From: Octopus bimaculoides
Lineage: Eukaryota
Reading direction: 5' to 3'
DNA length: 64,000 bases
Assembly (NCBI RefSeq): GCF_001194135.2
Contig: NC_068982.1
Coordinates: 95,839,464-95,903,463, forward strand
Shown: positions 19,979-51,940 of the stretch, piece by piece
Numbering within the stretch: position 1 is the first letter of the stretch
Layout of the letters: the number at the start of each line of letters is the position of its first letter
The notes under the pieces: generated by a model
What the model was told of the DNA's origin: nothing
Seen by the model: the letters and a program-made list of their open reading frames with translations, nothing else
The model's database searches: none
Made by a program: the position numbers and the translations under genes

Positions 19979-20938
19979 TCACAGTGGACAATATTCTCGA
20001 ATAATGTTACCTCCAGAATTTGAAACAGGTCTCAAATAACCGCTGTTGCCAGAAAGCCATTCTATATATTCTGCTTGTGTTGAGTCAAATGGTGAGGAGA
20101 GAGTTTCTGTCAGTACTTGGTCAGTGGTGTCATTGGCTCCATTGAAAATTCCGGTCCAACAGAACGGGTACATAGAGAGTAATTGAATATCCTGCTCATT
20201 TTCAAACTCGTTCTTAATGTAAGAGGAGAGGATATCTCTCAGTTGTAGTTTTTTCATGAAACGCTGTCTACCTGACTCCATTTCTGATTGCTCGAACTTG
20301 CCATGCTTTGAGTCTAATTTCGAAACAGCTTCATTGTTAATCTTTGACCGTCTATTTCGAGTTTCTCGTTGCTTTTCACAATGTCCCACATTAGCTAGTT
20401 TTTCTTCTTCTAGACTGTTATTGTTTTTATTCAGTGCCGCATGGAAATCAGGGGGTAATTCCTCGGAATAATCAAATTCATCAGGGTCCCTCTTTAGTTT
20501 CAGAGATCTTCGGCTAACACGTTGACCGAAGCCACATTTATAAAAAGGTATGGTTTTCCGCCTGGTCTTTATATTTGCTAATAAATCCTGCCGGCCTCTT
20601 CGAAAGTAAGGGTGGCTGAATGAAAAAACACCTCTAGAAGACACATGCCAGCCAAAACTATATTCGCGGAAAAGACGCCTCAGGTTAGTAAACTGTGGAA
20701 TTTGAACAAAGCCTGGATATAAGTCCATTACTAAAGCTTCATAGTTTTTAGGTCCAGGATTTTCTTCAATTAAGGAATTTGAAGCATTTTGTTGTGTAGG
20801 AAAGCCTAGTGATATTCTTACGCCATTACTGTCCCACCGAAGAATACGGCCGTCCTCAACTACTGCATAAAGTTTCTCTGGAAATTTGTCACCACGCTGA
20901 AGATAAAGGCGGACCTTTTGCTTTCTTTCTGGATTCAT
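19979..20938 (-). CDS. Intronless HSF-type DNA-binding-domain protein (divergent, HSF5/HSFY-like architecture), 319 aa
   Basis: Uninterrupted ORF; first ATG at 20938 (the ORF track starts 9 codons earlier at a TTG). N-terminal motifs FPEKLYAVVED..ILRWDSNG, FTNLRRLFREYSF and FSHPYFRRGRQDLLANIKTRRK line up with HSF DBD helix 1/W-G, helix 3 (canonical SFVRQLNMYGF) and the C-terminal F.HP.F.RG...LL..IKR. Confidence 0.85.
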   Translation of the reverse strand: MNPERKQKVRLYLQRGDKFPEKLYAVVEDGRILRWDSNGVRISLGFPTQQNASNSLIEENPGPKNYEALVMDLYPGFVQIPQFTNLRRLFREYSFGWHVSSRGVFSFSHPYFRRGRQDLLANIKTRRKTIPFYKCGFGQRVSRRSLKLKRDPDEFDYSEELPPDFHAALNKNNNSLEEEKLANVGHCEKQRETRNRRSKINNEAVSKLDSKHGKFEQSEMESGRQRFMKKLQLRDILSSYIKNEFENEQDIQLLSMYPFCWTGIFNGANDTTDQVLTETLSSPFDSTQAEYIEWLSGNSGYLRPVSNSGGNIIREYCPL

Positions 20939-20939
20939 T

Positions 20940-21320
20940 TTAACTTGGTATAATTTAGTTGGCAAACATATATATTGTTTTATGATTCTTTTTCCGTATA
21001 CTACATAGCAACATAGTGCAGCGAAACATGAGTCTCACTGAACGCATGTCCGTTAGTTCTTTGCTCGTGGGGTTTTCACGAGTAAACCGGATGTTAGCCA
21101 TGTGACTGCGTTTCAGAAGTAGATTTTAACACATTTTAATATATGTATCGTCAAACACAAGGCAAATCTAAGAATAAATCTATGAATTTACAAGGTCATT
21201 TTTCGTAAGTATTTTGTCTCACTGTAATTAATCTTAATAGAACGAAATACCATTTAAGCTAAAAACGAACACCACATGTTTGAAGTCCTCAAGTATCGGA
21301 TAGCAAAGACGGTGAGGGTA
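20940..21320. promoter_or_regulatory. Candidate bidirectional promoter / MARF1 non-coding first exon
   Basis: CpG-retaining, repeat-free DNA directly upstream of the HSF-like ATG; two plus-strand donor-like sites ACG|GTGAGG (GT at 21312) and AGG|GTAAGA (GT at 21318); CpG depletion begins shortly downstream. Confidence 0.4.
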
Positions 21321-23877
21321 AAGAATACGCACACCTGGTGTTTATGGTTAGGCTGAAAAAGGGTGGTATGCGTAGTCTTTACCCCCGCCGCAAAGAGAAT
21401 GTGATCAAGTCTAGACCAGTGAACAGTGCAAGTTAAATTAAACTTTCATGCTAGACATTCTTATATCTATATTTACGGAGACATTCATCGGCTATTTCCT
21501 AGCCTCTTAAATCTGGTCAAAAGAACTTTTAAAATGGGCCATCTAACGAAAAATCGATTTCTCAAATGTTTGAACAAAATGGAAAATGGAATGTTGTTGT
21601 GCCCATGCCTCTACTAATGACCTCAGTATGTTGAAACAACAAAACGTAAAAATTGACTACCCTCTTTTATTCTATGAGGCTCGATAATTCAAAATATATA
21701 GAGAATCCTGAAAATTTTGTGTAAGGTGAAATCACTTTAATTCCACAAATATTTTAAAGCTTTTGGTAGTAAATTTACACTAGAATATTCGTTGCCAACA
21801 GCATTTCTTCCATAAAATTGTTTCTTTTTTTCAAGAGCGTTTGTAAATGAAAAAAAATTGTCTTGCTTATATATAAATTGCACTACATGTGAGTGTCATC
21901 ACAGCATGTCAGAGTGTGCAGTGCGGTCCTTGGTTAGGAAGAGATATACATTGTGTATCAAGAGACATTGTAAAAACAATATATATATTGTTTATGCGTC
22001 CACTTGTCTCCGTTTTCTTGCGATAGAACCTTCGGTGCTTTTAGCATATCGAAAATTAATATCAAGACAAAACAGTACATCAAGCTACCTGTCGAAAATT
22101 TGGACCGTTCGCCTGACGTGACTGACGTTGCATTTATCTATAGCAAAATAAGTCAACTCTTACAGGCCCAGTACACCTAGAAGTCCTAATTTAACAGACC
22201 CATGATCAAAGGCATTCCAACCGTAACTATCGTCTTACTCCTAGACATATTGTGCCCAGAAACACCTAATATAAGATGTCCTTTTTACCTAGGAAACTAG
22301 AGGGAAATTTGAGATAAATTTGGCTGCTTTTTTTTTTTTTTTTTTGTAGATCGAACTTGTAGACGCTACCATTCATCTATCTCCGATGTAGATATTTAGA
22401 TACATTCCCTCACTAATACTAAGTGCAAAAGAACAGCTACCGTCGAGCTCAGCTGAGTCCACCACCAGAAACTACATTCCTTTAGAAATCAACTGGACAG
22501 TGGAGAGAGTGTATCTCCGGACTGTCACATTGCAGTGCAGTCCTTGGTTAGGAAGAGACATTGTATATCAGGAACAACAAATGTGAACTGTAAAAACCAC
22601 ATGATCAGTGAAATATCTAATTTGGCATAATATTCACACCTTTACATCTCTTTTATTGCTGTGTAATGCTCAGTAATTAATTCCAACAGTAACTTGAAAA
22701 CTTATTCCCCTAAATGTCTGGCTATGTGCCAATGTTAGAAACTATATAAAAGGACATAAAAACAGAATCTTCTATATTGTAATAAATTCAAATTAATTAT
22801 ACTTACATTTCACTAGCCTAGAAAAATTTAAACTATACTCTGAAAGACACTACCTTTGTCGTACCAACTATTGATGTTTATGTAATTGGAAGCTGAAAGG
22901 TAATTTAACATTAGAACATTAATCTAAGGATTTTGGTTAAACTGCATCTAATAATTTTTTCATGATCACTAATTGCTACAGTTATCTCTATTTTAGGTGG
23001 TGGTAGCAAGGGTCATGTTAATAGCAATCATGATAATGGTAGCAGTGTTTGGAATCATTGTAGTGGTGATGATAGTTGGCAAGATCAGAATAATATCAGT
23101 AATTAGAATGACAGTGAGTTGCTGTGATCAGTACATTACTGCAAGTGTGGCACAGAGATTAGATCAGGCATAGGCAACTTTTTATGCAAAGTGGGCTACA
23201 TGAGACATGTCTTACCTGCAGGTGAGTTACACTACTAAAAATTCAAGATAATTTTTCATTAGGGACACTATTCAGAAAGTCCCATAGATTGTCCATGACT
23301 GTGTTAGCTATTGTCAACCAGTTTTGATACAGAAAATATCTTACATAGTATTTTGTTTTAGCAATGTCAGTGTACCATACAGCTGGATTAACTAAGATCA
23401 CTTTTGGTTCAGCTGGACTTTCAGTGCACGTGGTCAATTCTGATACAGCAAGTTTCTCAAAGATTTGCTGAAACAACAGTCTACTAGATTGAGTGTTGGA
23501 GTATCAGCGTGAAATCCAATGCGGGATTTTTGTTACTGCTATGAAGCCCTAATGATCTCTGATCAAGCAAAAGTATGATCAAAAGCATTCCAGCCATGAC
23601 TATCTCATCTTGTTTCTATTCTACATCCAGGTCTATATTCCATTTTTTAAAAGAAAAGTCTGTATTATCTGTTGTGTCCCTTTTTACCATTTCAGTAAGG
23701 TGACTTGATAATAATTTGGCTGCTATTTGTAGAACGTTGACAGGCCTTATAGATGCAGCTTGGCTACCATGAATAAGTAGTGCACAAGTGTCTATTCAAA
23801 AGAATATTTTTTTGTTAAAACTTGTGCTTAGTCCAGAAGAAGCCAATTCAGTTCACTGTCTGTTTATAAAAAAATTA

Positions 23878-24262
23878 GTGGAGGTGCAATGGCCCAGTGG
23901 TTAGGGCAGTGGACTCGCGGTCATAGGATCACGGTTTCAATTCCCAGACCAGGCATTGTGAGTGTTTATTGAGCGAAAACACCAAAAGCTCCACGAGGCT
24001 CTGGCAGGGGATAGTGGCAAACCCTGCTGTACTCTTCCACCTCAACTTTCTCTCACTCTTTCTTCCTATTTCTGTTGTGCCTGTAACTCAAAAGGTCAGC
24101 CTTGTCACACTTTGTCACGCTGAATATCCCAAAGAACTACGTTAAGGGTACACGTGTCTGGAGTGCTCAGCCACTTGCACGTTAATTTCACAAGCAGGCT
24201 GTTCCGTTGATTGAATCAACTGGAACCCTCGACATCATAAGCGATGGAGTGCCAACAACAAC
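23878..24262 (+). mobile_element. SINE family A, full length, CpG-decayed
   Basis: Same consensus; flanked by an ATAAAAAAA(A)TTA duplication. Confidence 0.9.
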
Positions 24263-25419
24263 ATAAAAAAAATTACCTTTTACCTTCCATTTGGCTTGTT
24301 ACTACCATCATTTTTAACATCCACTTTTCCATACTTGCTTGCATCAGATGAAGTTTGAGATAGATCTATTATAGCTGATTGCATTTCCTGTCACCAACCA
24401 CCATTTGTTTCCAAACAAGGTAATATTTCCCAATGGTCACATGTTTCCACAATATCGGAAATAAATGATACTGCTTGTGTGACAGTAACACAAGGAGAAA
24501 CAAGCATACATGTACACACACAATGAGATTCTTTCAGTTTCCATTTACCAAATCCACTCACAAGGCTTTGGTCTGCCCAGTGCTATAGAAGACAATTCCC
24601 TAGGTGCTATGCTGTGGTACTGAACCCAAGACTATGTGGTTGGGAAACAAACTTCTTAACCACATAGCCATCCCTATATCTACAAATTCATTTTAATTAA
24701 CCTATTAATGATCTTAAAAAAATAACAAAACATTGTTATTCTTTTAGTGTGTGGAGGAGATGTAAAACTTCCAGTCAGAAAAATCTGCAACCAGTTTCAA
24801 ATCTTTATGGGATCCAAAAACAGGTCTCAGAAAAAATAGATTTTTAGTTTTTGCCATAAATATTTTAACCAGAAGCTATATTACAAATCTAAAAAATTAG
24901 ATTAAACCAATGTGCTTTTTTTTTTTTTTAAAGAACAGAGAGTAGCTCAAAAGATTTGGCTATTTTTACCTCTGGGAAATCAGTGCCTTAAGAAATAGCA
25001 AAACAGACTGGATAGAGGAGAAAATGCAACAGGCCCATACAATAAAGAGCCTCTACATAAACAATTGACATGCTAGAAATAGCAGCTGAATCATCCTTAA
25101 ATCATAATTTCTTTAATAAAAATGTAAGTACACATTGAACAATGTAGCTGTAGATATGCAAAAGACAGGATAGTCACAATGGTAATACCCTTTAAATTTT
25201 AGGTTCATTTAACTGGACTTCACTTGGAACAACTATTGTAGGAACAGTGTGTCGTTTTCAAATTGACAGAGGTAAAATATAGCTAGAGAACTGGCTCTAC
25301 AGATCTCATTGAGTTGCTCAGCCAACTACCTTTGTGCTATAGTTCTCAAATAGAATATGTTACATCTACATGGCATCATATCATCTTGAAATAAATTGAT
25401 ATTTATCTCAACACCCTGT

Positions 25420-26800
25420 GTCTATGCTATGTGTCTTGTGTTTTTGTTTTTGCAATTTTGTGTTTATGCTTTTTTGTGACTGTATATCTGAGTGTTTGTG
25501 TATCTGTGAGTGTCTGTTTGTGTGACTGTAAATCTGCAGGTTTCGTTAGTACGTCTGTCCTTTTCGGTTTCTGTAATTCTTGTTTTTCTAGCGTCTGTTT
25601 GTTTATATTTCTGTGTCTCTGCCTATCTTCCTGTTTATGTGTGTGGGTCTGAATTTTTGTGTGCTTAGAAGTCTGTATGTTTGTCTAGCATTGTCCCGTC
25701 TGTGTCATTTTTAACTGGAGATCCTATTGGTGTACTCTTTTTACTTAACATTGCTGGTTGGTCTGTTTCTTTTGTTCCATCATCGTTGACGACCTCTTCC
25801 TCTCTTTTTCTCGATTTTACCTCCACGAAATCTTGTTCCATCAGCTGTTCCTCCTCATTCCTTTTCTTGATTTTCAGTTTCTGCTATTTCATTCACTATC
25901 CTCGGGCACTTCCTTTTTAAGTGCCTCCCTTTCGCCGCACTCATAACACTTAGGTCTTCCCCCACCAACATTATCTCCAGCTTATCCCCATTGGGAAGCT
26001 CCAAAGTCTCTAGCATCTTTTTATACCGATCCTGGCACATCACGTACTCCTACCAATTCATTAGTTGGGTTCGGTTCATCAATATTATCCTTAATTTTTC
26101 ATTGTTCTTATCTTTATCATCCGAAAAAATTCCTGTGATAATCCATTCAGGATCAATGCGTGTTGGAATCCTGCCCAGCCTAACTGTATATACACTCATC
26201 CGTCAAAATTGGGCATCAATATCCATTTGTCGCCGAACTTTACCTCAGAGGCGTATTTTTCTGCATCTTCCTCTTGCACAAAAGTAATCTCCACTGATGC
26301 GTATGCTTTACTTCTCGTATAGAAAGAGGTTTTGTCTTTAAAATAATCCTCTATTACTTCATCTATTTCTTCTTGTAGCGCATTTTGAGTTTTCTACTCT
26401 TGTTCGAAAAAGTTCTGTATGTTATTGTTCCGTTCTCCATTTTCAATTTTTCTCCCCCTGGTAGGGTCAACCTAATATTCGACCCCTCTCTCCTCGCCAG
26501 GTTTTTGTATTTCTTGTACAGCTCTTCCTTACCACGCCACAATTCCTGCTTCAGCACCCTCGCGCCGATAGAAGGTCGGCTCTTCGTTGCCACAGCATAA
26601 CTCTTCATATCACCGAAAATTCACCACCACCAAACACTGATGGCTTTACACAAAAAATTGCTGCAAGCAGTACCAAAAACAACACCAACCGTTTACACAA
26701 AAACTTTTAGCAAAAATAAATGACACGCACCTCAAAAAAAGGAGACAAACATAATTAAAATCCTATTTCTTTTTTGCCCACAAGGGAACAATACAAAAAT
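25420..26800 (-). mobile_element. LINE ORF1-like unit 2 (divergent paralogue of unit 1), frameshifted, no ORF2
   Basis: Fragments VEITFVQEEDAEKYASEVKFGDKWILMP, VYTVRLGRIPTRIDPEWIITGIF and GRPKCYECGER/HLKRKCP (about 25900-25965); ends in an ACAC/AGAC-rich tract. Confidence 0.6.
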
Positions 26801-26829
26801 ATGTGGTGACACACAGCACGAAAAAATAC

Positions 26830-28310
26830 AATAAAATATAATATGAAAATGATAATGAAAATGTGTTGCTTGCCTCACGTCAAGCCGCATCACTTACTTC
26901 CATTTTATCTTTTAAATCTTGAGTCTTTCCGTATATCTATACCGTATTCTTCCTTTAGCTCCTTGTATGTCACATTGTCCTGTATTTTATCAATATCCAC
27001 GCTTATCCTCCGACATTCCTGTCCTTTCTTAAATTTAGCTATTTCTTCCTTTTTGTTTTTCTGACATCAGTATATACAGGTGCCATCCTACGTTCGTGCA
27101 CTCCTATAATTCTACAAACTTTACATTTTTCCACGTTGTTATTTTTGTTAAGTAGTTCCTCATCTATATCCTCCGTAATTATACAAGCACAACATATCTC
27201 ACCGCGAGGGGTATTTTGTACATTGTTGTGACTGTTTTTCTTTCTCTGTGTATCTGTGTAGGAGGGGAATGGAGGTTTGGTGTCTGCGGAGGGTATGGGT
27301 GGGATGGGTGTTGGTTGGGTTTCCTGTTCATCTTCACTTTTTTCCCTTTTTCTCTGCTTCACCACCTTCCATAATTCTTCCTTCTCTGGTCCCTTCCGTT
27401 CTTCCGGCTTTCTTTTTCTCAGGGCAGTCTGCTCTGTTGTAGCCCTTTTGGCAACATTTGTAGCAGCGAGGGATTCTACGTTTCACAGTCAACACGACTT
27501 CACCTATGGTTATGGTCTACCATTTTTTCCAGATATTTCGTAGCGCACTGAATTATGATTTCGAGAGCCTTACCTTGCCAGTTCGTGGCCTCTGTATTTG
27601 TGGCCTGGATGATTGTCACTTCCTCTTTGCTTCCCAGAAACACTGCTGCCGCCACCCAAGCCACGTTTATTTCCGAGGGAATTCCTTCCACCTTGACTCT
27701 GGCAGCCCTTCTTCCCAAGTACATTGGAAGGAGGACAACTTTGTCCGTCTTCAGAGGTGTTACTGAGTGTTCCCTTGCTTTCTCGATGCTTTTGAAATGA
27801 ACGTTCACTGTTCCGAAACGGCATCCTCTGGCAAGGTAAGTTATATATCGCCAAATTGGCCTGTACTCTCTCGATTACTTCTGTTGACTCTAAAGTGAGC
27901 TTTTCTTCCACTGAGTACACCTAGTAGACAATGATCTCTCCATTTTCCCATTATTTCCTCGAGTGGTGACAATTTAACATCACCACCATCTCTATCCACC
28001 ATGTTTTCGAACCTTCTCAAATTCTTCACATTTACCTCCTTTTTACGAATTTCTGTGGCTTCCGCGAAGGTCTTTCCTTCCAAACGCCTATCCATTTTCT
28101 TCCCCGCTCTCACGAGCTCCTCCTCTAATGACAACAATTCGCTGATATCCGAATAAACAGAGTTAGTTGAGTAATACCCTGCCACCTCTCACGGAGAGAA
28201 AGCACAACTGAACCGCTGCTAAGCAGCAAAAACAGTAAAAACTTTCAAGCAAACAAAATCAACACTATGCAGCACAAAAAAGAGAAGGAAAAAAAAAAAG
28301 GCGACCCGAC
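26830..28310 (-). mobile_element. LINE ORF1-like unit 1 (RRM-like region + CCHC-type knuckle), frameshifted, no ORF2
   Basis: Fragments VHFKSIEKAREHS...LLPMYLGRRAARVKVEGIPSEINVAWV and RCYKCCQKGYNRADCP (about 27422-27468); T-rich 5' leader. Confidence 0.65.
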
Positions 28311-28605
28311 AAACATAATTGCATAGTAATTTCGTTGCTTCTTTTCCTCTTTCTTTAGGGAGGTTACACTTTAAAACTTGTTGGGTGTTGATATGCAAAT
28401 TTTATTTCCTAGTCACAATATTTAAATGAGAAAGAAGTTGCATTATTTTTCTTTTTTTTTATATCCAGAGTGCTTATAACTTTTAATGATTTCTTCTCTG
28501 AAGATTCAGTGTGTGAACTGCACCTAAAAATAGTAAATTTTTACTTTTCATCCATTTTAAATTACTGAACATTTGGAAAGAGAACAAAACTAAAATTAAT
28601 TCACA

Positions 28606-28702
28606 ATGAATGACCTTCAAAATTTTTACAAAGATTTCTCTTGTGAATACTCTTTTATTTTACCACCAATATCACCAAGTTTAGATATGCCTTCCATATC
28701 AG
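28606..28702 (+). CDS. MARF1: MARF1 candidate first coding exon ([32 protein letters not shown]), ending at a GC donor
   Basis: ATG at 28606 in ACAATGA context, in-frame TAA at 28597, 32 open codons, then CAG|GCAAGT (GC-AG donor consensus) in phase 1, matching the phase-1 acceptor at 29317. Confidence 0.55.
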
Positions 28703-31086
28703 GCAAGTATCTTTATAATACATTATTGCTAAGGAGATAAATTTGTTTTAAGAAAATAATAACCTGCATTGTTTTTATGTTCTATGTTGAAGATAATTTT
28801 AATTATATCATTGATATAAGTCTTTTGAATTTTTTTTTTCTCAAAATACTTTTAAACAAGGTTGTTTTTTATCTGGAATGAATTTTTTTTTAATTTTGTT
28901 AGATACTGTAGGTACTGAAGTTTGTCATTTTTCTTTTTTTTTTACCATTACTAAAATTAAAGTAAATATCTGTGTATTATTTTAAATATATATGTTTCAT
29001 GTTATGAAGTTTTGTTTAATGTTCTTCATATATTAATTTAAAATAAAGTAGATCATTCTTCAATTAATTTCTGAAAATAGAATTCAATTCCGAATTAATT
29101 GAAATCAATTATTTACTAGAAATTTTGCTTATTTTATCCTACTTTTCCTATCAATAAAGTTATAAGATTACATGGTTATCTTTTTAAATTATACTTCAAT
29201 CTAAATTTATTCAAAGTGAATAATTTACTCTGATACTGTTTCATTTATAGCATCAAATTTTCATAAAGAATTACAATTATCTACGTCTTCAGTTTTTCTT
29301 TTTTTTTTTTCTACAGACTCTAAAATATCTGGATCGAACTCGAATAGCAATTTTGATGATGGAACTTTTTACCATAACCCAGATAGCAATTTGCCAGAGT
29401 CCTCACACAAAAATCACATCAATGCTGTTAAAGAAAGTGTCAAGTCTTCCTATAAAACCAATATAGACAAAGATAATTTTTCTAATATTTTTAAACAAAA
29501 TAGCATTCAAAAAGAACTAATTGAAGAAGTCAGTAGTCCTAGTTTACAACCTGGATTACTAGAAAATCCAAGATCCAATACATGTGATCCTTTAAACAAT
29601 TTTAGGAATCAATCTGAAAAATATTCTGCCACCCATAGCTTGTACACCCATCAAAACCCACTTAAAAATTCATTTCATCCTGTGAAAGCAAGAACACCAA
29701 ATTCCCAAATACCAAACACCAATCCAGTCTTATGGTCAGACTCTGAAAAATGTACTGTATTAGATTCTGTGGAAGTACTTGTTAGTAATCTTGACTATAA
29801 CATTAGTCCAAGAGAGTGGAAAGAAATTCTCTCTTCAACTTTTCGAGCTGCAGTTATGGTAAGATTTTCAGAAGTTATTATACTTAGTTCTTTATAGCAA
29901 CATAGATGGGGTGGATGGATGGTTATGTTCATATGTATATTCAACCACGGTAGTGGTTGAATATATTCTTAAGTTCACCATTTCGTCAATTGCAGCAGCT
30001 TCCAAGCTTCACCACTAATTCATTTCGCAACTAAATTACAAACTATCAATAGTTTTAAAGAGGACACCTCCTCAGCTACACTTTGGCATAAATAGTTTGA
30101 GATTTGGTTCTGTAGAAAAAAAGTTACATCAAAATATCTGCGACCTCAAGGGGGGGGGCAGTAAAGAAGATATTCATCTTAAATTAACATAAATTTTTTA
30201 ATTTTAAATTAAAAGTATACTTTTCTTAGGCTTAAATGAAAGGAAAATGCATGAAAAATTCAGAAACATTAGTCNNNNNNNNNNNNNNNNNNNNNNNNNN
30301 NNNNNNNNNNNNNNNNNNNNNNNNNNNNNNNNNNNNNNNNNNNNNNNNNNNNNNNNNNNNNNNNNNNNNNNNNNNNNNNNNNNNNNNNNNNNNNNNNNNN
30401 NNNNNNNNNNNNNNNNNNNNNNNNNNNNNNNNNNNNNNNNNNNNNNNNNNNNNNNNNNNNNNNNNNNNNNNNNNNNNNNNNNNNNNNNNNNNNNNNNNNN
30501 NNNNNNNNNNNNNNNNNNNNNNNNNNNNNNNNNNNNNNNNNNNNNNNNNNNNNNNNNNNNNNNNNNNNNNNNNNNNNNNNNNNNNNNNNNNNNNNNNNNN
30601 NNNNNNNNNNNNNNNNNNNNNNNNNNNNNNNNNNNNNNNNNNNNNNNNNNNNNNNNNNNNNNNNNNNNNNNNNNNNNNNNNNNNNNNNNNNNNNNNNNNN
30701 NNNNNNNNNNNNNNNNNNNNNNNNNNNNNNNNNNNNNNNNNNNNNNNNNNNNNNNNNNNNNNNNNNNNNNNNNNNNNNNNNNNNNNNNNNTATATATACA
30801 TTTTACACATGTAAAAAAAAACCTCATCACGCAATCGAACTGATGAAAGAGCCTCGACCTGGTCGTTCGACATGCTAAAAATAGCAACCTAAATCACATG
30901 CCCATTGGATGTAATGTCCTACGTTATCCCTAAAAAGACGGTTTGCTGAAGGCTGGAATGTCATTGATGATAGGTTTACAGTAAAGAATAAGTTTCGTAT
31001 TCTTTACTAGAAGTAATAGCTTGTCCTATACTTTTACAGGTTTATAATCTTAAGAATATTACTTTTTATGCTTGCATTTTTCCATG

Positions 31087-31127
<41 letters not shown>

Positions 31128-34100
31128 TATATATGTATATGTATTATTGTGTCTGAGGAGAGCCAAATATAAAAACGAACATATATATATATACACACAC
31201 ACACAGATGTAGTTGTCTTATAGTAATAAGACAAACATAGAAGTATTAGGATGTATATTTAGGGTGTCATACAAATTCCCATACACTATCATCATTCCCA
31301 TTTTACATTCATTTTTCATACTATTATGTGTTGGACAGGTCATTGCTCTCTTAAACGGATTGGAGAACAATGACTTGCATGTAAATTTCATTTTTGCCTT
31401 GGTTTCTGCAGCTGGATGTGCTTTCTAATGCTAACCACTTTACAGTGCACAATATGCATTTTATTGCAACACCAGCATTAGACAGAATGGAAATAGGAGA
31501 GTGGTGGATAGCAAAAGATGAATAAATTAGTGAATGATGGCTATTGATACTACAATGCCAGTGGAAGACAATATGGGTCAAGTATATGGTACACATGCTG
31601 ATCTGAGGAGTTCCTATATGCATATACATCAAGATAGGTATAAGTTAGTGATAAAGTTAAAAGTATTTATTTCACATTTACAGTGCTATTTATAAAATAT
31701 CTTTGTTTCAGATATTTAGTGATTTGATTTGAGATTTTAATCCTGAGACTAAAATAATTACATTGTTGTAATAATTTTAGCCATTAAGTTTTGTTATACA
31801 TTGTCTGGAGAAACTGGTGACTGATGTGGTCCTTGAAATACATAGGCAGGGAAGAAATTCCTGAGTATTCATATTCTAGATAGGAACAATTGGTGATAGT
31901 GCTTGGTGGGGAACAGGAGTATGCAAGAGTCAGGTAATCCTAGATGTGGGTAAATAAAAACTGGCCAGCTCAAAGAATAGAAGCCACTATAATAGCAGTG
32001 AAGACAGTGAGGAGATTTCACATTTGTGAACTAAAAGTTGAAAATTCTATGCTAATTAATTAGATGGCATTTTGTATGTGGTTTATGTATGTATTAGCAA
32101 CAGCACTGTCTTGGATTGGGAGAAGTATTACAATGTATGTTAGCAACTGTTGGAAAGATAGAGAATTCTATCCTTGAAGATGAAGGCTAGTCTTTGAGAT
32201 ATAGGTTTGCTATGTTGTAAATGTGACATAGTTAATGTATTGATACTTACTGTCAATGGCTAAATCATAGATCTGATGAAAGACTTTTACATCCATTTTT
32301 TTTTCCTATGATTTCATGAAACTGCTGTAATGGCTACATAATGCAAATAATAGAAAAATTATAAGGTAACATATTTTTAAAATACTGCTTTTCATTTTCT
32401 TGTCAATATTCAGTACATTATTTCTGTCAAGTCATTCTCATAGCATTTTTGCCATTGGGGCACTTCAGTTTTGTTTTTAACAATATTCCTTTCAGTTTTT
32501 GACTTTCAATTGAGATGAGTGGAAAGTAATACAATTGTTATAAAAATTTTCTACAAGAATCATAAAAGTGACATATCTTTAAAAATGTTCAGTATAGAAT
32601 TAAATATTGATATAACTTTCATTCACTTGCTTCATGGGTTTGGTAATCTATCTCTTCCCCCAAGGTGTGGTGCCATAATGAAGCTCATCTGCCTTTGATA
32701 AGTTTGGTTTTATTATTCTGCTGGATGTTCACACACTCTTTGAGAAAATTCTTTTGGGAACTGTTTATTCACCATCCACTTAACTATGAACAGTTAGTAT
32801 TGCTATTGGTAGCAAGTTTTCATCAGCCTGTAATAGAATTGGTCCTGACCTGACAACTATTTCTGTATTATTGCTGTATAAAATTGCTACTTAATTCACT
32901 TAAGTAGGCTCAGTAATCAAAAATCTAATTGATAGAATATTTATCTTAGCATGGTTTGACCAAACAATTACCAAGTCCTGTTTCTTAACTAGTTGCAAAA
33001 AGAAAATAAAATCCATACCATGTTCCCTTTTTTATGCTGGCATAGGTTGCACAGGAGTTTTTGAGGCATTTTTTTTTTTTTTTAAGCTAGATGCCCATCC
33101 TGAGGTCTACTCTTGGTGGTCTAACACTGGGATTCAGTTTGCTTATTGGGTTTCTCATGGATAAATATTACATTAGATATACTGACTGTAACTTTATGAA
33201 GCTGAGAAAAAATAATGTAACTATCATGTAGTCATCTACAGTTCCTTGAATTCAGTTTTGTCTAAAGCTCTCTTGAAATAATTGTATGATGTATACAGTT
33301 TGGTGAGCAAAAAGCTTAGGCTCCAAATCATAGCTTCCAGTAAAATCAATTTTATTTTATGCAAGTTTTTTTTTTTTTTTTTTTTACCAACGTGGTATTT
33401 TCAGAAGGTTATTCAGCCACTAAAAACAAATTATTGAAAGGCCACATTGTAATAAAATTTTGACATAATACTGAAGTGACCAACAACCAGTGTGTTGTCA
33501 AAATGACCCACCCAAAGTATAACATTATCTAATCTTTTTTCTCTGCTTTAGTTTCATTGTATTTTGTTTATCAGGTTATTGATGTAACAGTCAAAGCACA
33601 ATCTGATAATTCAAACTTGGCCATTGTGCGGGTACCAACAACTGATGATGCCAGATTTGCCATATCTCAATTTCATGGAAAGAAAATTGGTTATAAAAGA
33701 GTACATGTGTGTTTAAAGTCTGAAGGAAATTTGAATCAGTCTAGCATAAGGTATGTTTTCTCTTTTTCATTGTCAGAAAGAGTCCTACAGATTTAAACTA
33801 ATTTATAAACTTCCTTATTAAATTAACCTCAAATGTTTTGTTTATATTTTTTAGACAAGTAGCTTATCGAGGGAATAAGAAATTATGTAACACGATCTTG
33901 TTTGACCCCAGGTGAGGCCTAAAGAAACAGACCTATGATCAAAAGCATTCCAGCCATGACTATCTCATCTTAAGAATTTCATATCTGGGAATACATTGTG
34001 TGTCGTCAGGTTCAGAGGTGTAGTATAAGGAAGATTCGCCTATTTCTTGTAGGTCAAGTGACTAGACAGTGGCCCTGTTACTGGCTAGTTTATAATATTA

Positions 34101-37100
34101 ACAATGATGGTGAAATCAATACAACTACAACCACAAATAAAATCTGAACCATAAACTTAGTTTGATAAGTTTACCCTACAGTATTGTCTAATTTAACATA
34201 TAAGAGCAGCTTTCTACCAATGAAATACTAAATAATGTTTACCTGTTATGTAAGTTATGAAACGGTGAAAAAACAAAAAACAAAAGCACATCACCACTTT
34301 GCTACTTCTCATATGAACTTGAATCAACAAGCTAATTGCAGTAATTATTAGATGTGCAAGACTTGTAAGATTCTCTTATACTAATACTAGATGCAGGCAT
34401 GGCTGTGTGGTAAGAAGCTTCCTGACCATATGGTTCCAGGTTCAGTCCCACTACATGGCACCTTGGGCAAATGTCTACTATAGCCTCAGGCTGACCAAAG
34501 CCTTATTAGTGGATTTAATAAATGGAAACTGAAAGAAGCCTGTCATGTATTTGTGTGTGTGTTTGTCCTCCCCTCCATCAACTGACAACCGATGCTAGTA
34601 TGTTTGTCCCCTTAGCAGTTCAGCAAAAGAGACTGATAGAATAAGTACTAAACTTATAAAGAATGTCCTGGCAGGGAGTCGATTTCTTCAACTAAAACCC
34701 TTTAAAGTGGTGCTTAGGCATGGCCGCAGTAAAATAACTGAAATGAGTTAAAGAATAAAAGAATCTTGCAAAAATAGATAATAAAATAAAAGCGAAATTA
34801 GATATGATAATGCAGGCATGGCTGGTTAAGAAGTTCACTTTGCAGTCTCATGGATTCAGGTTCAGTCCATGGTGTGGCACTTTGGACAAGTGTCTTCTAC
34901 GGTAACCCTGAGCCAACCAAATCAGTGAGTGGATTTGGTCGATGAAAACTGAAAGAAACTTGTGATTGTGCCTTGTTTTGACATTGCCTGATAGTTGTAA
35001 AATGAGTATTCTGTCATACAAGCAATGTCATTTGTTTCCAGTCTCCTATGAAAAACATATGGTGACAATGGGGGGAGGGGAATCACCTTGCTTGGAAACA
35101 GGTTTGGTGACAGGGAGAGTATTTGACCATAGAATATCTGCCTCAAGGAATTCTGACCCATACAAGCATGGAAATGAGGTTAAAATGATGTATAGGTAGT
35201 AAGGAAGGATAGAAACACACCATGCTTTACTGCAACCATTTGGACTCCTTGGTTTTGTATCAAAGTTCTGCCATGGGTCTTTTTTTTTTTTTCTGTTAAC
35301 TTCTCTGAAGTTAAAATATATAACACAGGTTTTATTCTGTTGGTTATGTGATAAAGTGGAAAATTATCCTGCCTTATCAAAAAATAGTTTACTTTATATT
35401 TATCATGGAGGAGGGATGTTAACACTAGAAGGACCAGACTTTTCTCCTATCTTTAAGGTCCAGAATGTGTCAATTGATGCAAAGATGTATTCCAGTTAGA
35501 AAGGGAAAAGAAAGAAAACCTTTATTAAATGTATTAATCTATTGAATTTTATGAATTCAGTTTTTGAATTGTGTGCAATTAAGATTTCAAAAGGCATTAA
35601 TTGACACACTTGGTCCTTCTAGTGTTGAATGATGATGATGATATATAAGTAAAATGGTTTAAATTATTTGGGGAATTAACTGTTAAAATTTTTCTGTAGA
35701 TGAAGAAAATGATTAATGAAGAACTAAACCATTTGCTTCTTAGTATTGTAACTTATCTTATTACATGAAAATTCTACCTAGATCAGTAACATGTTAAGTT
35801 AATTCAATTATGTCCTTTTAAATAATTATATTTAGTCAAAAGTAAATTGATGGCAATGTAAACACCTGCAAATGTTTTCTAGTTGAATGCTAAAGTTTTT
35901 ATCTTTCGATTTTTTTTTTTCTTTTTTCTTTGTTAAATCTAATAGCAATTCATTTTCTTCCTAAACCTGAGATCTTACTCCACGTAAGAAATTCAATTCT
36001 ACAAATTATTAAACATTTAAATTTGCATGTAACGCACAAGGTAAATGTTTGTGATGTTGAAAAGAAAGCAAATTTTATTCATTCTGGTAAACATTCCATA
36101 CAAGATTTTGTTCAAATTATGAAAATTTTTTAAAGTCAATACTTTTATAGTTTGTTATGACTCTTTTTGCTATTGTTTAATCACATATCAGCCTTAATCA
36201 AAGACTTGTAAATCAAAGCTGTTCCAGCTTTGACTGTCCCATATTTTTCCAAACCCTTTTGTCAATGATTTGGTCTTGAAGAAGCCATGTCCAAAGTGTT
36301 CACTGACCCTCCAAAGATGTCATAGCTCATAGGACTACATTATCTCATTTCATTAAGAGTGATTTTCTGATTGGTCAAACAGTGGGAGCAGAATCTCCCT
36401 TGTTATCTTCATTACTTTCCAACTTAAAGCATATTTGAAATAATTCTCTTCTCTTTTCTGAGTATTACCAATTCATTTGATCACTGACACAATACCACTT
36501 ACCTTGCTGCTGGTCTGTCTTCCAACAAGGGCCATCTAGTCATCCTAAGATAGGAAGATGTTTGGGATGTGTGATACCTTGACCATAGCAATGAAAGGCC
36601 ACTGTCTGTTTGTCCAAGAAGTTTCAGCCATCAGTAATCAGTCTGTGACTATGCAGCCCTTCCAAAAGGGATGCAGTCATGAGGAGGACCAGAGAAATGC
36701 AATTGCTCTTACCTGTGCTGCTACTTCCATGTGCTTGAAACCATGGAAGTGAAGGTGTTTCATTGTTGCAGATGTGCTACCAGACTATCCAGTCTTTGGT
36801 TGCAGATGTCAGTTGTGTGCTTGCAATCATACCTGAATAGGGGGGAGTGAACAATGATTAATGACTTGTACAACAAGTTTGATTGAAGTGATAATGAGTT
36901 ATGAACTTTCACCCTCACTTTTTCTGGTTCCTATGTTGATTCAGTGGCAGGACAATTGTTGCAATGGCTGGAGGTGAGGTCAGGTACAGTAGAAGAGCCA
37001 GTCAATGGGATATGGCCTTGTGGTTAGGGTGTACTTTTCTAGGGAGTATTCCTCAAAAGTGATATCCAAGAATTGGAGTGGTTGTGAAAGCTCAAAGCTC

Positions 37101-40100
37101 AAGTTAAATGGAGTGTGATGCAATGATGTTTTTTTATGAGTAACATTTGGCATCCCTTTATTAGAGGATGCTTTTGAGGTCTCTGTTCAAGGAGCTGGTG
37201 TAGTTTTGGCATATAGTTTTGAGATTGTAATGGATGATGTGTAGTTAGAGAATGTTGGGAGAAATAAAGGATAGTGTCATCTACATTAGAGTAGGTGTTG
37301 TTGGATGTGACAGCAAGTTAGTCATTGATGAATAGAAGGAAGAGGGTGGAGATAAATCTGAACCCTATAAAATGCCTTTATAAGCGGAATGATGAACAGA
37401 ATGAGCTCCATCAAAACATGCAACACTGCAATTCGACAGGAAGCTTTCAATCCAAGAAATGAGACATGTGGTGACCATAGGTTATCAGTTTTCTTATTCA
37501 CATGCCTGGCACAGACAAAACTTTTGCTGACATGAAGGGCAACCACATTGCTTTCACCAAATTTGTTCAAGAGCCAACTGATGAGTGATTGAGTAAGCCA
37601 CTAGTGAATCTGACTTTACAGAAATTGTATTGGTGGTCATTAAGAGGAAGATTAAAGTCGTTGGAGAGGCATTAATGACTCTACATTACCTAAGATTTTA
37701 GAAGTGAGTGCAAAATTCCAATAGACAGCAGTGAGGGTGCTGTTTTTGAAAATGGGACACACTGTAGCATGTTTCTAAAGAAAGGGATAGATCCTTGTAG
37801 AGAGTAAGATTAAAGAGCCTGGTGAATAGAGGGGCAAGTTCTGGAGCACAGTGCTTGAGATTTACTAGAAAAGACATTGTTAGGACTATAAATTAGATTC
37901 AGGCTATAAATTAGATTTAGAAAAGAGGAAAAGATCACTGGTGTTTTGACTGTCTGGGTATCAATCTGGGACACATGTAGTGGGTAAGACAAATTGATGC
38001 TGGCAAGAGGTTCAGATTCTGCACAGATGGCATCAATGTGGAGTAAATGAGAGAATCACAAGGAGTTGTGAATGTTAAAGCCACTAAGAACAACTTTAGA
38101 GGGAAATGAAGAAAGATGTCTTCAGTGCAAGAGGAGGTAGGGTCAAGGATTTTGGTGGTTTGAAGAATTAGAAGAGTAATAAAAGATGCAGCTGTATTTG
38201 GGGGAGTGAAGGAGGGAGAATTGAATCCTGATAACTTGTTTTTATTGCTTGCATTTATAGTTGTTGTCTCAAAGAGGACTAGGTTTTATGGTCTGAGTAG
38301 GATTGAGAGTGGAATGATTTTAGACACTGGAGAGAAAATTGTCTGGAGGTTTTACTTCTGGATTTATGTATTTTGAGTAAGAGGGTGGCGGTGCATTGAA
38401 AGAAAGGTCATGACAACTCCTGGACCAAATGCTTGGAATATAGCAAACTCTACTTAAGGCACCCAACGACCAACTTGGACATGGCTCCTTCTCCACTACA
38501 AAAAATGTCTTTAACAAAGGTATTTTTTTGCAAGACTGAAGAATGTTTTCTGATATTCATTAAAGTAAATAATCTAGTGTATGACAATGAATTTTTGAGA
38601 AAAATAACTTACCATGATTGACAATTCAATGTAATTGTGTACATCAGTAATAAAAATACTTTATGAAGATATATAAATTTGTTCCAAGCAGATCAGAAGC
38701 AATAGCCATACTAAAAGAAGCAAAAGGACATGTTTTGCCACTGTTTAAGTTCATTGAACACTTTGACAGAAGGTAAGATACATATTTTAATCTAACATCT
38801 ATTTTTGTTAATGTGAAATTTATTATCAGTTGTGATGCCCTTACTCTGAATGAGTTTGCTGAATAAACGTTACTGTCTTCTGCTGTGGTGGTAAATAGAG
38901 AAGCTGTATGACACTCTAGTGGTGAGTGAGGATGTGTCTGTCTCTCTGTCTCTCTCTCTCTCTCTGGTAGAGGCAGCAGAGTGAAGGGTGTGTGTGTGCA
39001 ATGAGGAGTGGAAGTGAAGCTGCATGCCTCTCTCTCCTTTTGGCATTGGGTAAAGCCATGTATGTATCATTGTTGCAGGGGAGGAAATAAAGGTTGTGCA
39101 ATGCTATTGCATTTCTTCCTTTTTTTAATTTTTCTCTTGTGCTTTGTATACAATGATCCCTACTGTGATCCAACAATTTGTTCATTTCCAACATTCAAGA
39201 CCTATTCCCAGCCCTACATTTTCAGTAGTTCAGCATTTTACCAAGAAAATATAAGAAACAGCTTTCTGTATTTATCTTGTGTAAGAGAATGCTTGTGTTG
39301 AGATGTGTGGGTTATCTTTCAAGTCTGATAGGATTACAAATAGAGCTTATCCATTATCTTGATTGTAATTAAACTGAATACACAAATAACAATGTCTGCA
39401 ATATTTAATGTGAGCAATGTAATTATCACAACTTCCAGGATGTAACATGTAATTAGTAAGAGATGCATAATTAGTGTGTATGATTATTTCAACTTGAGAT
39501 TGAAATGCTTAATATTATAGCACAGATGATATAATTTAGTGTCTAGAGTTTGTTCACAAAATTTCAGTTAACTTTATTTGCCATTCTTCTGGAATTGAAA
39601 TATGTATCAGTATCAGCTATGATTTAATCTCTTAGATATAGACCCTTGTTACTAGACAGTATCATAGACCAACTTCCAGCAAACAGTTCATAACTTAATT
39701 CAATTTCCTAATTAAAGATATTTCAATTAACATTTGCTAACCCTTACAAGGCCATCAATGTCATTTCCACAAGTTGTAAATCATTGTGTATCAAAATATT
39801 AACTACTAGTGCTTCCTTCTAAGATAGGTGTAAAGCCATAAATTTGAGGAAGTATTGTAATGTTCTTGCTTGGCTGGCTGATGTAAAATTGGATACACTG
39901 AAAAGCTATAATCTCAACACAGTATACAATTATGCTAACCACAATGCCACACTGTTGACCGGAAGCAGACTAGGTTCTAATTCGATCATTTCTAATGACT
40001 CCTGTGTAACAAACTATTTTTGCAACAAACTCTCATCAAGTCCACCTTGCATATTGCACTGACAACCACCAGGGTTTTGTACAAGAAACTGGGAAGCAAA

Positions 40101-43100: not shown

Positions 43101-43668
43101 ATAACTTTTCAAGACCTTTAGTAGTTCATTAAATCCTTCTTCTGTTGGTCATCTCTTAGTAAATTTTAAGACATTTTAGATTTTTTTCAATTAATGACTA
43201 GAATCAAATATTTATAGTGCAAAAAGTCTGCAATTTGTTGAAGTAGTTGAAACTTCTTTCTTTTTGGCAGATATATTCGTATCTCTAACTGTAGTTGGTC
43301 AAACCTGAGGGAATGAGCAAAACTTCTTTTCATGGTTAAGGCACAAATGAATTTACAGAACCTTTTTCAAAAATGATAATAGTGATGATAATTTTAACAT
43401 TTTCTGTGTCCTTTCAATACTCTTGAATCAGATACATTAAGTTCGTTGATGCTACTCTCTTTTACTCTTTTACTTGTTTGTCATTTGACTGCGGCCATGC
43501 TGGAGCACTGCCTTTAGTCAAGCAAATCGACCCCACGACTTATTCTTTGGAAACCTAGTACTTATTCTATCGGTTCTTTTGCCGAAGCGCTAAGTTACGG
43601 GGACGTAAACACACCAGCATCAGTTGTCAAGCAATGTTGGGAGGACAAACACAGACACACAAACATAT

Positions 43669-43699
<31 letters not shown>

Positions 43700-48963: not shown

Positions 48964-49014
<51 letters not shown>

Positions 49015-49119
49015 NNNNNNNNNNNNNNNNNNNNNNNNNNNNNNNNNNNNNNNNNNNNNNNNNNNNNNNNNNNNNNNNNNNNNNNNNNNNNNNNNNNNNN
49101 NNNNNNNNNNNNNNNNNNN

Positions 49120-49173
<54 letters not shown>

Positions 49174-49728
49174 GATAGATAGATAGATAGATAGATATGT
49201 GTATCTAATATATATATAATGGGTGTGTGTATATATATGTGTGTGTGTATCTGTGTATATATATATATACACGTATATGTGTATATATATATAGATGTGT
49301 ATCTGTGTATATATATCAATATCTATAAAACAGATGTTTGTGTGTGTGTGTGTGTGTGTGTACGTGAATGTGATTTATACACGTCCACAAATTAGCACGC
49401 ATGTCACTCCAATTTTAGAAGATTCGGAATGACCCTATGTGCATTTTAGTGAACTTTCTCTCTGAGGTACTCGCGTATACCTGTAAAAATCGATAAACTT
49501 TTACCAATTTTGAAGTTTGTTGACATGGCGAAGTCAAATTTGTGTGTACGCGCTGAAGTAGAGAGAGAGAGAGAGAAATTATGTTTGTGAGAGGGAGGGT
49601 GAAGGAGAGATACATTTTTTTGCCAGCGTCTGTGTGGTAAGCAGCAATCAAACAGAAAAAAATACCCTCTCTCTCTCTATCTATCTCTCCCTCCCTTACA
49701 TACACATGCCAGTTATCTCTCTTTCTTT

Positions 49729-49763
<35 letters not shown>

Positions 49764-50236
49764 CACATGTTGCCAAAAAGAAATAGATGCTTTCTTTTTA
49801 TAGTGAGTATGCCAGACAGAAAGTGTGGTGTGTATGTGAAGTTGTTTTGTTAGTGTGTGAGAGCAGCATGTGTGTGTGTAATGTTGCTGTGTGTGTGAGA
49901 CAGGGAGAGAGAGAGAAAGAAAGAGATAAATGTGTGTAAGGGAGGGAGAGAGATAGAGAGGGAGAAGCGCTCTCTCTATCTCTGCCGAATTGATGTAAAC
50001 AAACCCATGTGGTCTGATTTTCATGTTTCTAGGTATTGTACCGTAAATCGCCATTTCCAAAATATATTTATTTCAAATCATTTATCCGTATATATATGTA
50101 AGGCAAGGTGTGTGTGTGTTTTGTTGATATACGGGCAACATACACACACACACATACGAACATGTATGCGTACAAAAAATATGTATGCAATTGGTGTGCA
50201 TACGTGCGTGTGTGTCTGTATGTGTTGCTCATATAA

Positions 50237-50279
<43 letters not shown>

Positions 50280-51357: not shown

Positions 51358-51403
<46 letters not shown>

Positions 51404-51491
51404 CGTGTGTGTATATAGATAGATATGTGTATCTGTGTGTGTATACATATGTGTATGTGTGTATATATATATTGATATGTGTATCTGTATG

Positions 51492-51527
<36 letters not shown>

Positions 51528-51899
51528 TATAGGTGTGTGTGTGTGTATAGATATGTGTATGGGTGTATGTTTATTTATTTATTCTATATATATATGTGTG
51601 TGTGTATATGTATATATAGTGTGTATTTTTGTGTATAGATATTGATATGTGTATCTGTGTGCGTGTGTGTGTATATATATATATATGTAAATATATGCAT
51701 ATATCCATACATATCTGTACATAGCTACATCTATATGTATACATACAAGCATATATGGGTACATATATATACATATATATATACATATATATATACACAT
51801 ATATATATATACATGTGTGTGTATATATATGTATATATATATGTAGATAGATTTGTGCATCTGTGTGTATGCATATATATAGATATATGTATATATGTA

Positions 51900-51940
<41 letters not shown>

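Follow-up and report, generated by a model that had tools for sequence, protein, structure and literature searches.

A single-exon octopus gene from an old molluscan branch of the heat shock factor superfamily with a variant DNA-reading helix

A single-exon gene in a 64,000-nucleotide stretch of the Octopus bimaculoides genome (NCBI RefSeq assembly GCF_001194135.2, contig NC_068982.1, positions 95,839,464 to 95,903,463 of the forward strand; this whole stretch is called the window here) encodes a protein that carries the DNA-binding domain (DBD) of the heat shock factor (HSF) superfamily, as established by a profile match, by the predicted fold, and by the retention of a key arginine. The gene is held by purifying selection, and the third helix of its DBD (helix 3) bears the signature of a whole family of proteins. 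Judging from the sequences of its relatives, the octopus gene is a member of an old HSF branch that is mollusc-wide and probably annelid-wide too. Our explanation as a whole, which we regard as probable though far from certain, is that this is a functional single-exon gene of the HSF superfamily, the octopus orthologue of an old spiralian family, whose product would contact DNA in the manner proposed below.

The open reading frame (ORF) runs on the minus strand from an ATG at positions 20938 to 20936 through 319 codons to a TGA stop codon at positions 19979 to 19981. An earlier reading made without database searches (the sequence-only reading) had reported an intact ORF of 319 residues at exactly these coordinates but had not named the strand. 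Translation of the plus strand over the interval is riddled with stops, and all of the motifs quoted in that reading are found in the minus-strand translation (Table 1). When the window was block-shuffled 200 times, the longest ATG-initiated ORF encoded 232 residues, and no shuffle reached 319 codons. Therefore, the ORF is not a chance product. Its surroundings are repeat dense and AT rich, as had been described, with a local GC fraction of 0.36 to 0.37, dispersed repeats, and reverse transcriptase (RT) ORFs nearby. No transposon genes adjoin the ORF in the window, and the gene is present as a single copy both there and in the orthologous loci of Octopus vulgaris and Argonauta.

Membership in the HSF superfamily is established by two checks that the sequence-only reading had proposed. 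First, the HMMER comparison with the Pfam profile PF00447 (HSF_DNA-bind) covers the whole domain (residues 19 to 125, profile positions 1 to 99 of 100) and gives 29.1 bits against a gathering threshold of 22 (E value of 1.5e-6), a score that is above the Pfam cutoff yet very low for an HSF DBD. Second, an AlphaFold2 model of residues 1 to 135, computed with 100 family sequences, recovers an HSF-type winged helix-turn-helix with the element order a1-b1-b2-a2-a3-b3-b4 (predicted local distance difference test score [pLDDT] of 78.5 and predicted template modeling score [pTM] of 0.70). When this model was compared with the PDB using Foldseek, the first 43 matches were all DBDs of HSF1, HSF2, HSF4, HSF5, or Skn7, with TM-scores (normalized to the target) of about 0.8, root mean square deviations of 1.7 to 2.5 Å, and identities of 20 to 25%. 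Likewise, a profile built from nine DBDs of the family matches HSF2 (4e-10), HSF4 (5.7e-9), and HSF1 (1.6e-8) in the PDB, with the chains of these three proteins spanning 4e-10 to 6e-8, whereas HSF5 (8zys) is the weakest HSF match at 8.7e-4.

Among solved structures, the DBDs of HSF1, HSF2, and HSF4 (5d8k, 5hdk, 7dct, and 6j6v) are thus the best sequence matches, and they share with the octopus domain the same fold and element order, the guanine-reading arginine, the Tyr/Phe core, and the H-P-x-F-x-R-G-x-x-x-L-L block. The octopus protein is only 22 to 24% identical to them and differs further in its altered helix, in an arginine in place of Asn74, in a shorter wing, in a loop after strand b2, in that neither HR-A/B nor HR-C was found, and in its single-exon coding sequence. 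It is not a canonical protein of the HSF1/2/4 type, since the signature helix, the wing, and HR-A/B all fail to conform.

Orthologues of the gene occur at syntenic positions in O. vulgaris (320 residues, 97% identity) and in Argonauta hians (319 residues, 74% identity), each as a single exon, and the flanks of the octopus gene are 86 to 92% identical to O. vulgaris chromosome OX597815.1. Ratios of nonsynonymous to synonymous substitution rates (dN/dS) were computed pairwise by the Nei-Gojobori method. The comparison with O. vulgaris yields 0.20 for the whole gene (13 synonymous and 10 nonsynonymous differences; dS of 0.066), and the comparison with Argonauta yields 0.116 for the whole gene (dS of 1.10, near saturation), 0.067 for the DBD, and 0.135 for the rest. 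This check, which had also been suggested in the sequence-only reading, hence gives values of 0.07 to 0.20 and not values near 1, and the full length, the start, and the stop are kept over a dS of about 1.1. These results leave almost no probability for a decaying or nonfunctional ORF, whether as a pseudogene or as a DBD carried by a transposon. Such a reading would find support in the P0099 cluster, a partial and decayed DBD copy from another octopod that is described below, but the substitution ratios, the single copy in three loci, the lack of adjoining transposon genes, and an ORF length beyond chance all speak against it.

A more distant homologue (P0003, 40% identical) has the cephalopod-type insertion and tail that are described below. 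Six independent assemblies (L004 to L009; Logan ERR12408770/1, ERR12370320/3/4, and ERR12374250) contain the same contig of about 3095 nucleotides for P0003, with identical ends that start with T21 and end 16 nucleotides after AATAAA. This contig may be a transcript or a genomic unitig, and it was not counted as evidence of expression.

To delimit the family, the DBD profile was searched exhaustively with HMMER over 1.84 billion representatives, which returned 1256 proteins below 1e-3, 128 below 1e-10, and 40 below 1e-30. Proteins with the helix 3 signature form about 90 clusters at 50% identity. After alignment to the profile, residues were counted in the 95 domains with scores of 75 bits or more, and these domains define the signature Y-P-G-F-V-Q-I-x-x-F-x-N-[FL]-R-R-[LQ]-[FLM]-R-E-Y-[GS]-F-x-W. 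By octopus numbering, N85 is present in 95 of 95 domains, R88 in 94, R91 in 92, and R87 in 86 (plus 8 with Lys); Y93 and F95 are each present in 93, with gaps in the other 2, and W97 is present in 75. The window protein carries the pre-helix and helix signature as YPGFVQIPQFTNLRRLFREYSFGW, and it lacks the canonical S-F-V-R-Q-L-N-x-Y-G-F, reading N-L-R-R-L-F-R-E-Y-S-F in its place. Two subtypes can be distinguished. The R-R-L subtype has 50 domains and includes the window protein, and the R-R-Q subtype (43 domains; N-F-R-R-Q-L-R-E-Y-G-F) is visibly intermediate to the canonical helix.

The taxonomic range of the family was taken from members that are named by organism, and beyond the molluscs it comprises a single annelid protein. 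In addition to the cephalopods O. vulgaris and A. hians, these members come from the gastropods Littorina saxatilis (V1264_013068), Nucella lapillus (ACOMHN_028606), Pomacea canaliculata (PVD30299.1), and Plakobranchus ocellatus, from the bivalve Pinctada imbricata (KAK3100314.1), and from the annelid Ridgeia piscesae (KAK2182127.1), whose helix is the close variant NFRRQLREYGF. A locus tag of Lottia gigantea (LOTGIDRAFT_159233) turns up in an annotation. Family members are annotated only as hypothetical or as "HSF-type DNA-binding domain-containing protein," and our literature searches found no paper describing an HSF-like family with an N-[FL]-R-R-[LQ]-x-R-E-Y helix. An HSF-family gene of Crassostrea gigas (LOC105331364), which may or may not belong to the family of the octopus protein, is one of the transcription factors whose sex-biased expression in the gonad was verified by RT-PCR (PMC12111275).

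Canonical-type HSFs and an HSF5-type protein (P0102) score far below family members when compared with the family profile, with values no better than 1e-13 (1.6e-13 for P0102), and the family is therefore a distinct branch. The mollusc relatives are 300 to 500 residues long and share with the octopus protein the helix 3 signature, the short wing, the K-T-R-R-K tail of the DBD, and a K-N-E (KNE) motif further downstream. In annelid-type members, position 89 is still Gln (R-R-Q-L-R-E-Y) and the KNE motif is missing. The sequence-only reading had proposed a lineage-specific paralogue, which does not hold given that gastropods and a bivalve share the helix signature and an annelid has a close variant of it. 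Only a loop insertion in the DBD and a C-terminal tail with the pattern GYLRP...PL are specific to cephalopods, and relatives outside the cephalopods lack both. A further divergent HSF-like group (P0103, P0105, P0108, P0109, P0111, P0114, P0126, and P0134) scores 56 to 66 bits against the family profile and has S-L-R-R-S-L-R-W-Y-N-F or C-L-R-R-L-F-A-V-Y-E-F as its helix 3.

The roles of individual helix 3 residues can be judged by comparison with HSF-DNA contacts that are already known. HSF1 Arg71 (HSF2 Arg63) hydrogen-bonds the GAA guanine in bidentate fashion, HSF1 Asn74 (HSF2 Asn66) contacts the base before GAA through water, HSF1 Arg117 (HSF2 Arg109) touches the base before TTC, and the wing makes no DNA contact (PMC8379338). 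We assigned equivalent positions from the HMMER alignment to HSF2 and from an alignment without gaps in which the conserved residues Pro75 and Phe95 served as anchors. Octopus Arg88 corresponds to HSF1 Arg71 and HSF2 Arg63 and is retained. Arg91 replaces HSF1 Asn74 and Arg87 replaces Val70, with Asn85 at the position of Ser68 and Leu89 at that of Gln72, and K124-T-R-R-K128 occupies the segment around HSF1 Arg117. Because Arg88 aligns with HSF1 Arg71, the main guanine reader is kept, and the auxiliary base-contacting position and its neighbors are replaced family-wide. The helix that the sequence-only reading had called rewritten is therefore strongly altered but not wholly so. In the K-T-R-R-K tail, T125 and R127 are invariant in both of our alignments (A1 and A2) and are present in 73 and 79 of the 95 family domains, respectively. 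This basic tail is likely to serve as a nuclear localization signal.

These correspondences suggest a mechanism of DNA recognition in which helix 3 (residues 83 to 93) would enter the major groove and Arg88 would read guanine as it does in HSF1 and HSF2. Where HSF1 has the water-bridging Asn74 and Val70, the octopus protein has Arg91 and Arg87, respectively, and these two family-specific arginines would shift the preference for flanking bases. Given these two substitutions, the target is probably akin to, and not identical with, nGAAn. From the sequence, kept guanine recognition with a changed flanking preference is what we infer as the most economical account.

The mode of binding is also likely to differ from that of canonical HSFs. 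The sequence-only reading had noted a very short wing and no obvious HR-A/B heptads, and both observations stand, the latter on two weak tests. The wing is reduced to a five-residue turn between strands b3 and b4 and, when aligned to HSF2 by HMMER, falls 9 residues short of the wing of that protein. HR-A/B heptads were not found in a crude scan of a/d positions, which peaks at 0.5 in the octopus protein versus 1.0 in a canonical multi-DBD HSF (P0094), and no helix is predicted between the DBD and residue 224 in the low-confidence model of the full-length protein. Pro and Gly directly follow the DBD (residues 131 to 164), and the segments there are charged and poorly conserved. With no HR-A/B and a stub wing, the protein is unlikely to assemble into heat-activated trimers on three-site heat shock elements (HSEs). 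It would more likely bind sites singly or in pairs, either as a monomer or by means of other contacts. Three relatives (P0004, P0008, and P0009) have two complete DBDs in tandem, both with an N-L-R-R-L-L-R-E-Y helix, and such tandem domains, which fit binding without a coiled coil, may stand in for the absent oligomerization domain.

An ordinary HSE-binding factor that is oligomerized by a partner, such as a canonical HSF, and acts in the heat shock response would explain the retention of Arg88, which reads the base, and of the hydrophobic core of helix 3, and HSF1 and HSF2 are known to heteromerize (reviewed in PMC12366260). We consider this reading unlikely. No HR-A/B was found in the octopus protein, and this is the region through which HSF1 and HSF2 heteromerize; furthermore, Asn74 is replaced and two extra arginines are present in helix 3 throughout the family. 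A canonical three-site HSE (GAAnnTTCnnGAA) is also absent from the whole window, including the upstream region of the gene, but only 0.7 such sites are expected by chance, which makes this absence uninformative and the point a weak one.

The octopus protein has three further notable parts. The insertion of about 20 residues after the second strand, which had been noticed in the sequence-only reading, appears as a 17-column gap in the gastropod and bivalve relatives and is present in Argonauta and P0003. In the model, the insertion is a disordered loop of about 17 to 19 residues following strand b2, with a pLDDT below 50 at residues 48 to 58. Downstream of the DBD, a second conserved module consists of a K-N-E core followed by acidic residues, in which L233, K242, N243, and E244 do not vary between the cephalopod and gastropod sequences of alignment A1. 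About 24 of the top 100 representatives, almost exclusively of the R-R-L type, have a [KR]N[ED] motif in the same context, about 100 to 130 residues past the DBD. The low-confidence full-length model places a helix at residues 224 to 256 over this module. Finally, the C-terminal tail, with the pattern EW..G..GYLRP....G.I.R.Y.PL, is kept in Argonauta and P0003 and is predicted to form a beta-hairpin whose strands (residues 300 to 306 and 312 to 318) reach a pLDDT of about 62, the highest in the full-length model. The KNE/acidic helix (residues 231 to 253) is a candidate effector or partner-binding motif, and the cephalopod C-terminal hairpin would likely serve in the same way.

We also considered the KNE motif as a remnant of HSF1 HR-C, which starts with "KNELSD." The likeness is not supported: a BLASTP comparison with an HR-C segment yielded an E value of 2.9, and no match to the Pfam family Vert_HS_TF was obtained at E values up to 10.

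Vertebrate HSF5 provides the best functional analogy for such a protein. HSF5 is without HR-A/B, its wing is absent or poorly conserved, and its DBD contains a disordered insertion; it recognizes single GAA sites and functions in meiosis under non-stress conditions (PMC11059408). The octopus protein resembles it (8zys) in that HR-A/B was not found, in the reduced wing, in a disordered DBD insertion, and in a helix 1 that starts with FP-x-K-L-[WY], where HSF2 has F-L-S-K-L-W. Orthology with HSF5 (or with HSFY/HSFX) would fit these likenesses, as well as a position adjoining the meiosis gene MARF1, yet we judge it improbable on comparisons with HSF5 itself. HSF5 keeps S-F-I-R-Q-L-N-L-Y-G-F and carries its insertion between helix 2 and helix 3 (PMC11059408), whereas the family has N-[FL]-R-R-[LQ]-x-R-E-Y and the octopus insertion, which only cephalopods have, lies between b2 and helix 2. 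The family profile prefers HSF2, HSF4, and HSF1 over HSF5, as described above, and the true HSF5-type protein P0102, which matches 8zys at 1.2e-26, scores poorly against that profile. A search of the PDB with the N-terminal half alone, looking for affinity to HSF5, returned only noise. Because the helix and the insertion site differ and HSF5 gives the poorest sequence match of the HSFs, orthology with HSF5 is not supported.

Plant HSFs generally have a short turn between b3 and b4, which we saw here in one protein. This plant-type tandem HSF (P0117) has a very short turn (F-R-K-V-E-A-D-K-W-E-F) like the stub wing of the octopus protein. Unlike the octopus protein, plant HSFs keep S-F-V-R-Q-L-N-x-Y-G-F and have HR-A/B right after the DBD.

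The intronless structure of the gene bears on its origin. The coding sequence is a single exon not only in the window but also in O. vulgaris (963 nucleotides, 320 residues), in Argonauta (960 nucleotides, 319 residues), and in Littorina (1500 nucleotides, 499 residues). Since the Littorina homologue has a single exon too, the intronless state is older than the split between cephalopods and gastropods. We found no poly(A) tract or target-site duplication beside the gene, only short low-complexity direct repeats, and the first minus-strand AATAAA past the stop codon is 3.1 kb away, which is uninformative for a retrocopy origin. An intronless state of this age is not expected to preserve the hallmarks of a retrocopy, and an ancient retroposition is possible but not demonstrable.

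A young, cephalopod-specific retrocopy of a canonical HSF gene that diverged quickly, as the sequence-only reading had envisaged, is by contrast very unlikely. Such an origin agrees with the single-exon coding sequence, with the repeat-rich DNA and RT ORFs of the window, and with the low Pfam score of 29 bits. It is contradicted by the phyletic spread of the family, in which gastropods and a bivalve have both the helix 3 signature and the KNE motif and an annelid has a near variant of the helix. The single exon of the Littorina homologue, the missing poly(A) tract and target-site duplication, and a gene position and MARF1 neighbor that are kept between Octopus and Argonauta at a dS of about 1.1 all argue in the same direction.

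In O. vulgaris and Argonauta, the gene closest to the HSF-like gene is MARF1 (MARF1_LOTUS and OST-HTH domains), a factor in oocyte meiosis and RNA stability, which is transcribed divergently at 2.6 kb from the start codon of the HSF-like gene in O. vulgaris and at 5.7 kb from it in Argonauta. The head-to-head arrangement is thus present in three octopods (the window species, O. vulgaris, and Argonauta), and in the window a large MARF1 gene takes up much of the sequence. In the window, the two genes share an intergenic region of about 2.2 kb that is collinear with O. vulgaris sequence (L001, 7430-10000) at 86 to 91% identity, and this region may contain a bidirectional promoter. Blocks of MARF1 that are conserved with Argonauta lie at positions 28581-28719, 29772-29871, and 33557-33725. 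The conserved pairing with MARF1 is a weak hint at a germline role of the HSF-like gene.

The decayed DBD copy mentioned above is represented by a cluster of 143-residue ORFs from Logan (P0099 and P0163 to P0165) and corresponds to residues 64 to 133, with key residues mutated. It is flanked by sequences that, when translated, are 74 to 83% identical to two adjacent pieces of the intergenic region between the HSF-like gene and MARF1; the matching site is at positions 23042-23220 of the window (minus strand) and at L001 7315-7496. The sequences suggest that a partial, pseudogenized duplicate of the DBD was inserted near the 5′ end of MARF1 in another octopod.

Elsewhere in the window, the only other ORF of similar length encodes a retrotransposon reverse transcriptase of 359 residues (RVT_1 and DUF7047), and a second retrotransposon remnant is a 162-residue ORF in which RVT_1 precedes a PHD-type zinc finger. 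Assembly gaps filled with N at positions 4947-5575, 6613-7038, 30275-30790, 49015-49119, and 50704-51297 produce artifactual long "ORFs" of X in all frames, and microsatellites of the (TA)n and (CA)n type are dense at 48.7 to 52 kb.

Table 1. Features of the HSF-like gene, its product, and its neighbors in the window
Feature	Window positions	Strand	Residues	Basis or remark
Complete single-exon coding sequence	19979..20938	minus		ORF, orthologous gene models, dN/dS, shuffles
HSF-type winged helix-turn-helix DBD	20552..20884	minus	19-129	Pfam, AlphaFold2, Foldseek, dN/dS
Helix a1			19-29	model
FPEKL			19-23	quoted motif, found
Strand b1			33-35	model
W35..NG			from 35	quoted motif, found
Strand b2			41-44	model
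Cephalopod-specific loop, b2 to a2, GFPTQQNASNSLIEENPGP	20750..20806	minus	45-63	alignment, model; quoted insertion, found
Helix a2			63-73	model
Helix a3			83-92	model
Recognition helix a3 and C-cap, FTNLRRLFREYSF	20654..20692	minus	83-95	HMMER alignment to HSF2; quoted helix 3, found
Strand b3			96-99	model
GWHVSSRGV, wing region			96-104	quoted motif, found
Reduced wing, turn SSRGV, b3 to b4	20627..20641	minus	100-104	model secondary structure
Strand b4			105-109	model
FSHPYFRRGRQDLLANIK			107-124	quoted motif, found
Short C-terminal helices of DBD			117-129	model
Basic DBD tail, K-T-R-R-K	20555..20569	minus	124-128	at HSF1 Arg117/HSF2 Arg109 segment
Second conserved module, K-N-E core then acidic residues, LQLRDILSSYIKNEFENEQDIQL	20180..20248	minus	231-253	
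C-terminal tail, predicted beta-hairpin, YIEWLSGNSGYLRPVSNSGGNIIREYCPL	19982..20068	minus	291-319	conserved in cephalopods
Intergenic region shared with MARF1	20939..23108			collinear with O. vulgaris
MARF1 exons	23108..59432	plus		neighbor, not part of HSF-like gene
RRM-like exon of MARF1	33533-33793	plus		
OST-HTH/LOTUS exon of MARF1	58839-59159	plus		Pfam OST-HTH, 56.6 bits
Retrotransposon reverse transcriptase ORF	13996-15075	plus		RVT_1, DUF7047
Second retrotransposon remnant	48004-48492	minus		RVT_1, PHD-type zinc finger

Several points weigh against our explanation of a functional octopus orthologue in an old spiralian family with a modified mode of DNA binding. What we propose for the DNA specificity and the oligomeric state of the octopus protein is purely inferential, and since Arg88, Tyr93, and Phe95 are kept, ordinary GAA recognition may persist. 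The heptad scan is crude and must be considered weak, given that a plant-type HSF itself scored only 0.7. The AlphaFold model of the full-length protein, computed with 7 sequences, is poor (pLDDT of 38.6) and served only for rough secondary structure. The dN/dS value against Argonauta is only approximate because dS is near saturation. Finally, no neighboring gene was called within 10 kb of the Littorina homologue, and the linkage to MARF1 was seen only in octopods.

On the analogy with HSF5 and the position beside MARF1 only, the most likely role of the protein would be a constitutive one in development or the germline rather than in stress. A bolder proposal, to which we give a modest chance at best, is that the family is an undescribed ancient spiralian branch of HSFs that does not trimerize and whose helix 3, through Arg-Arg-x-x-Arg, would read a non-HSE motif as a monomer or in tandem. 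In octopods, the gene would then be co-regulated with MARF1 from a shared divergent promoter in a germline or meiotic setting and would be an independent analogue of HSF5.

HSFs are usually viewed as proteins with one conserved helix that reads nGAAn and a coiled coil for trimerization. HSF5 shows that HSFs without a coiled coil can run a meiotic program on different sites. The analysis here sets apart a family that spans molluscs and at least one annelid, in which the coiled coil was not found, the wing is mostly lost, and the coding sequence is intronless. Its near-invariant substitutions at an auxiliary base-contacting position offer a natural experiment in recoding the specificity of the HSF fold, and the family adds uncharacterized transcription factors to the gene catalogues of cephalopods and other molluscs. 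The practical gain will be modest until binding motifs and expression are known. It is reasonable to hypothesize that these proteins differ in DNA specificity, bind without trimerizing, and serve outside the stress response, possibly in the germline. The octopus gene is not a cephalopod invention but part of a variant branch of the HSF superfamily that has a different DNA-reading helix.

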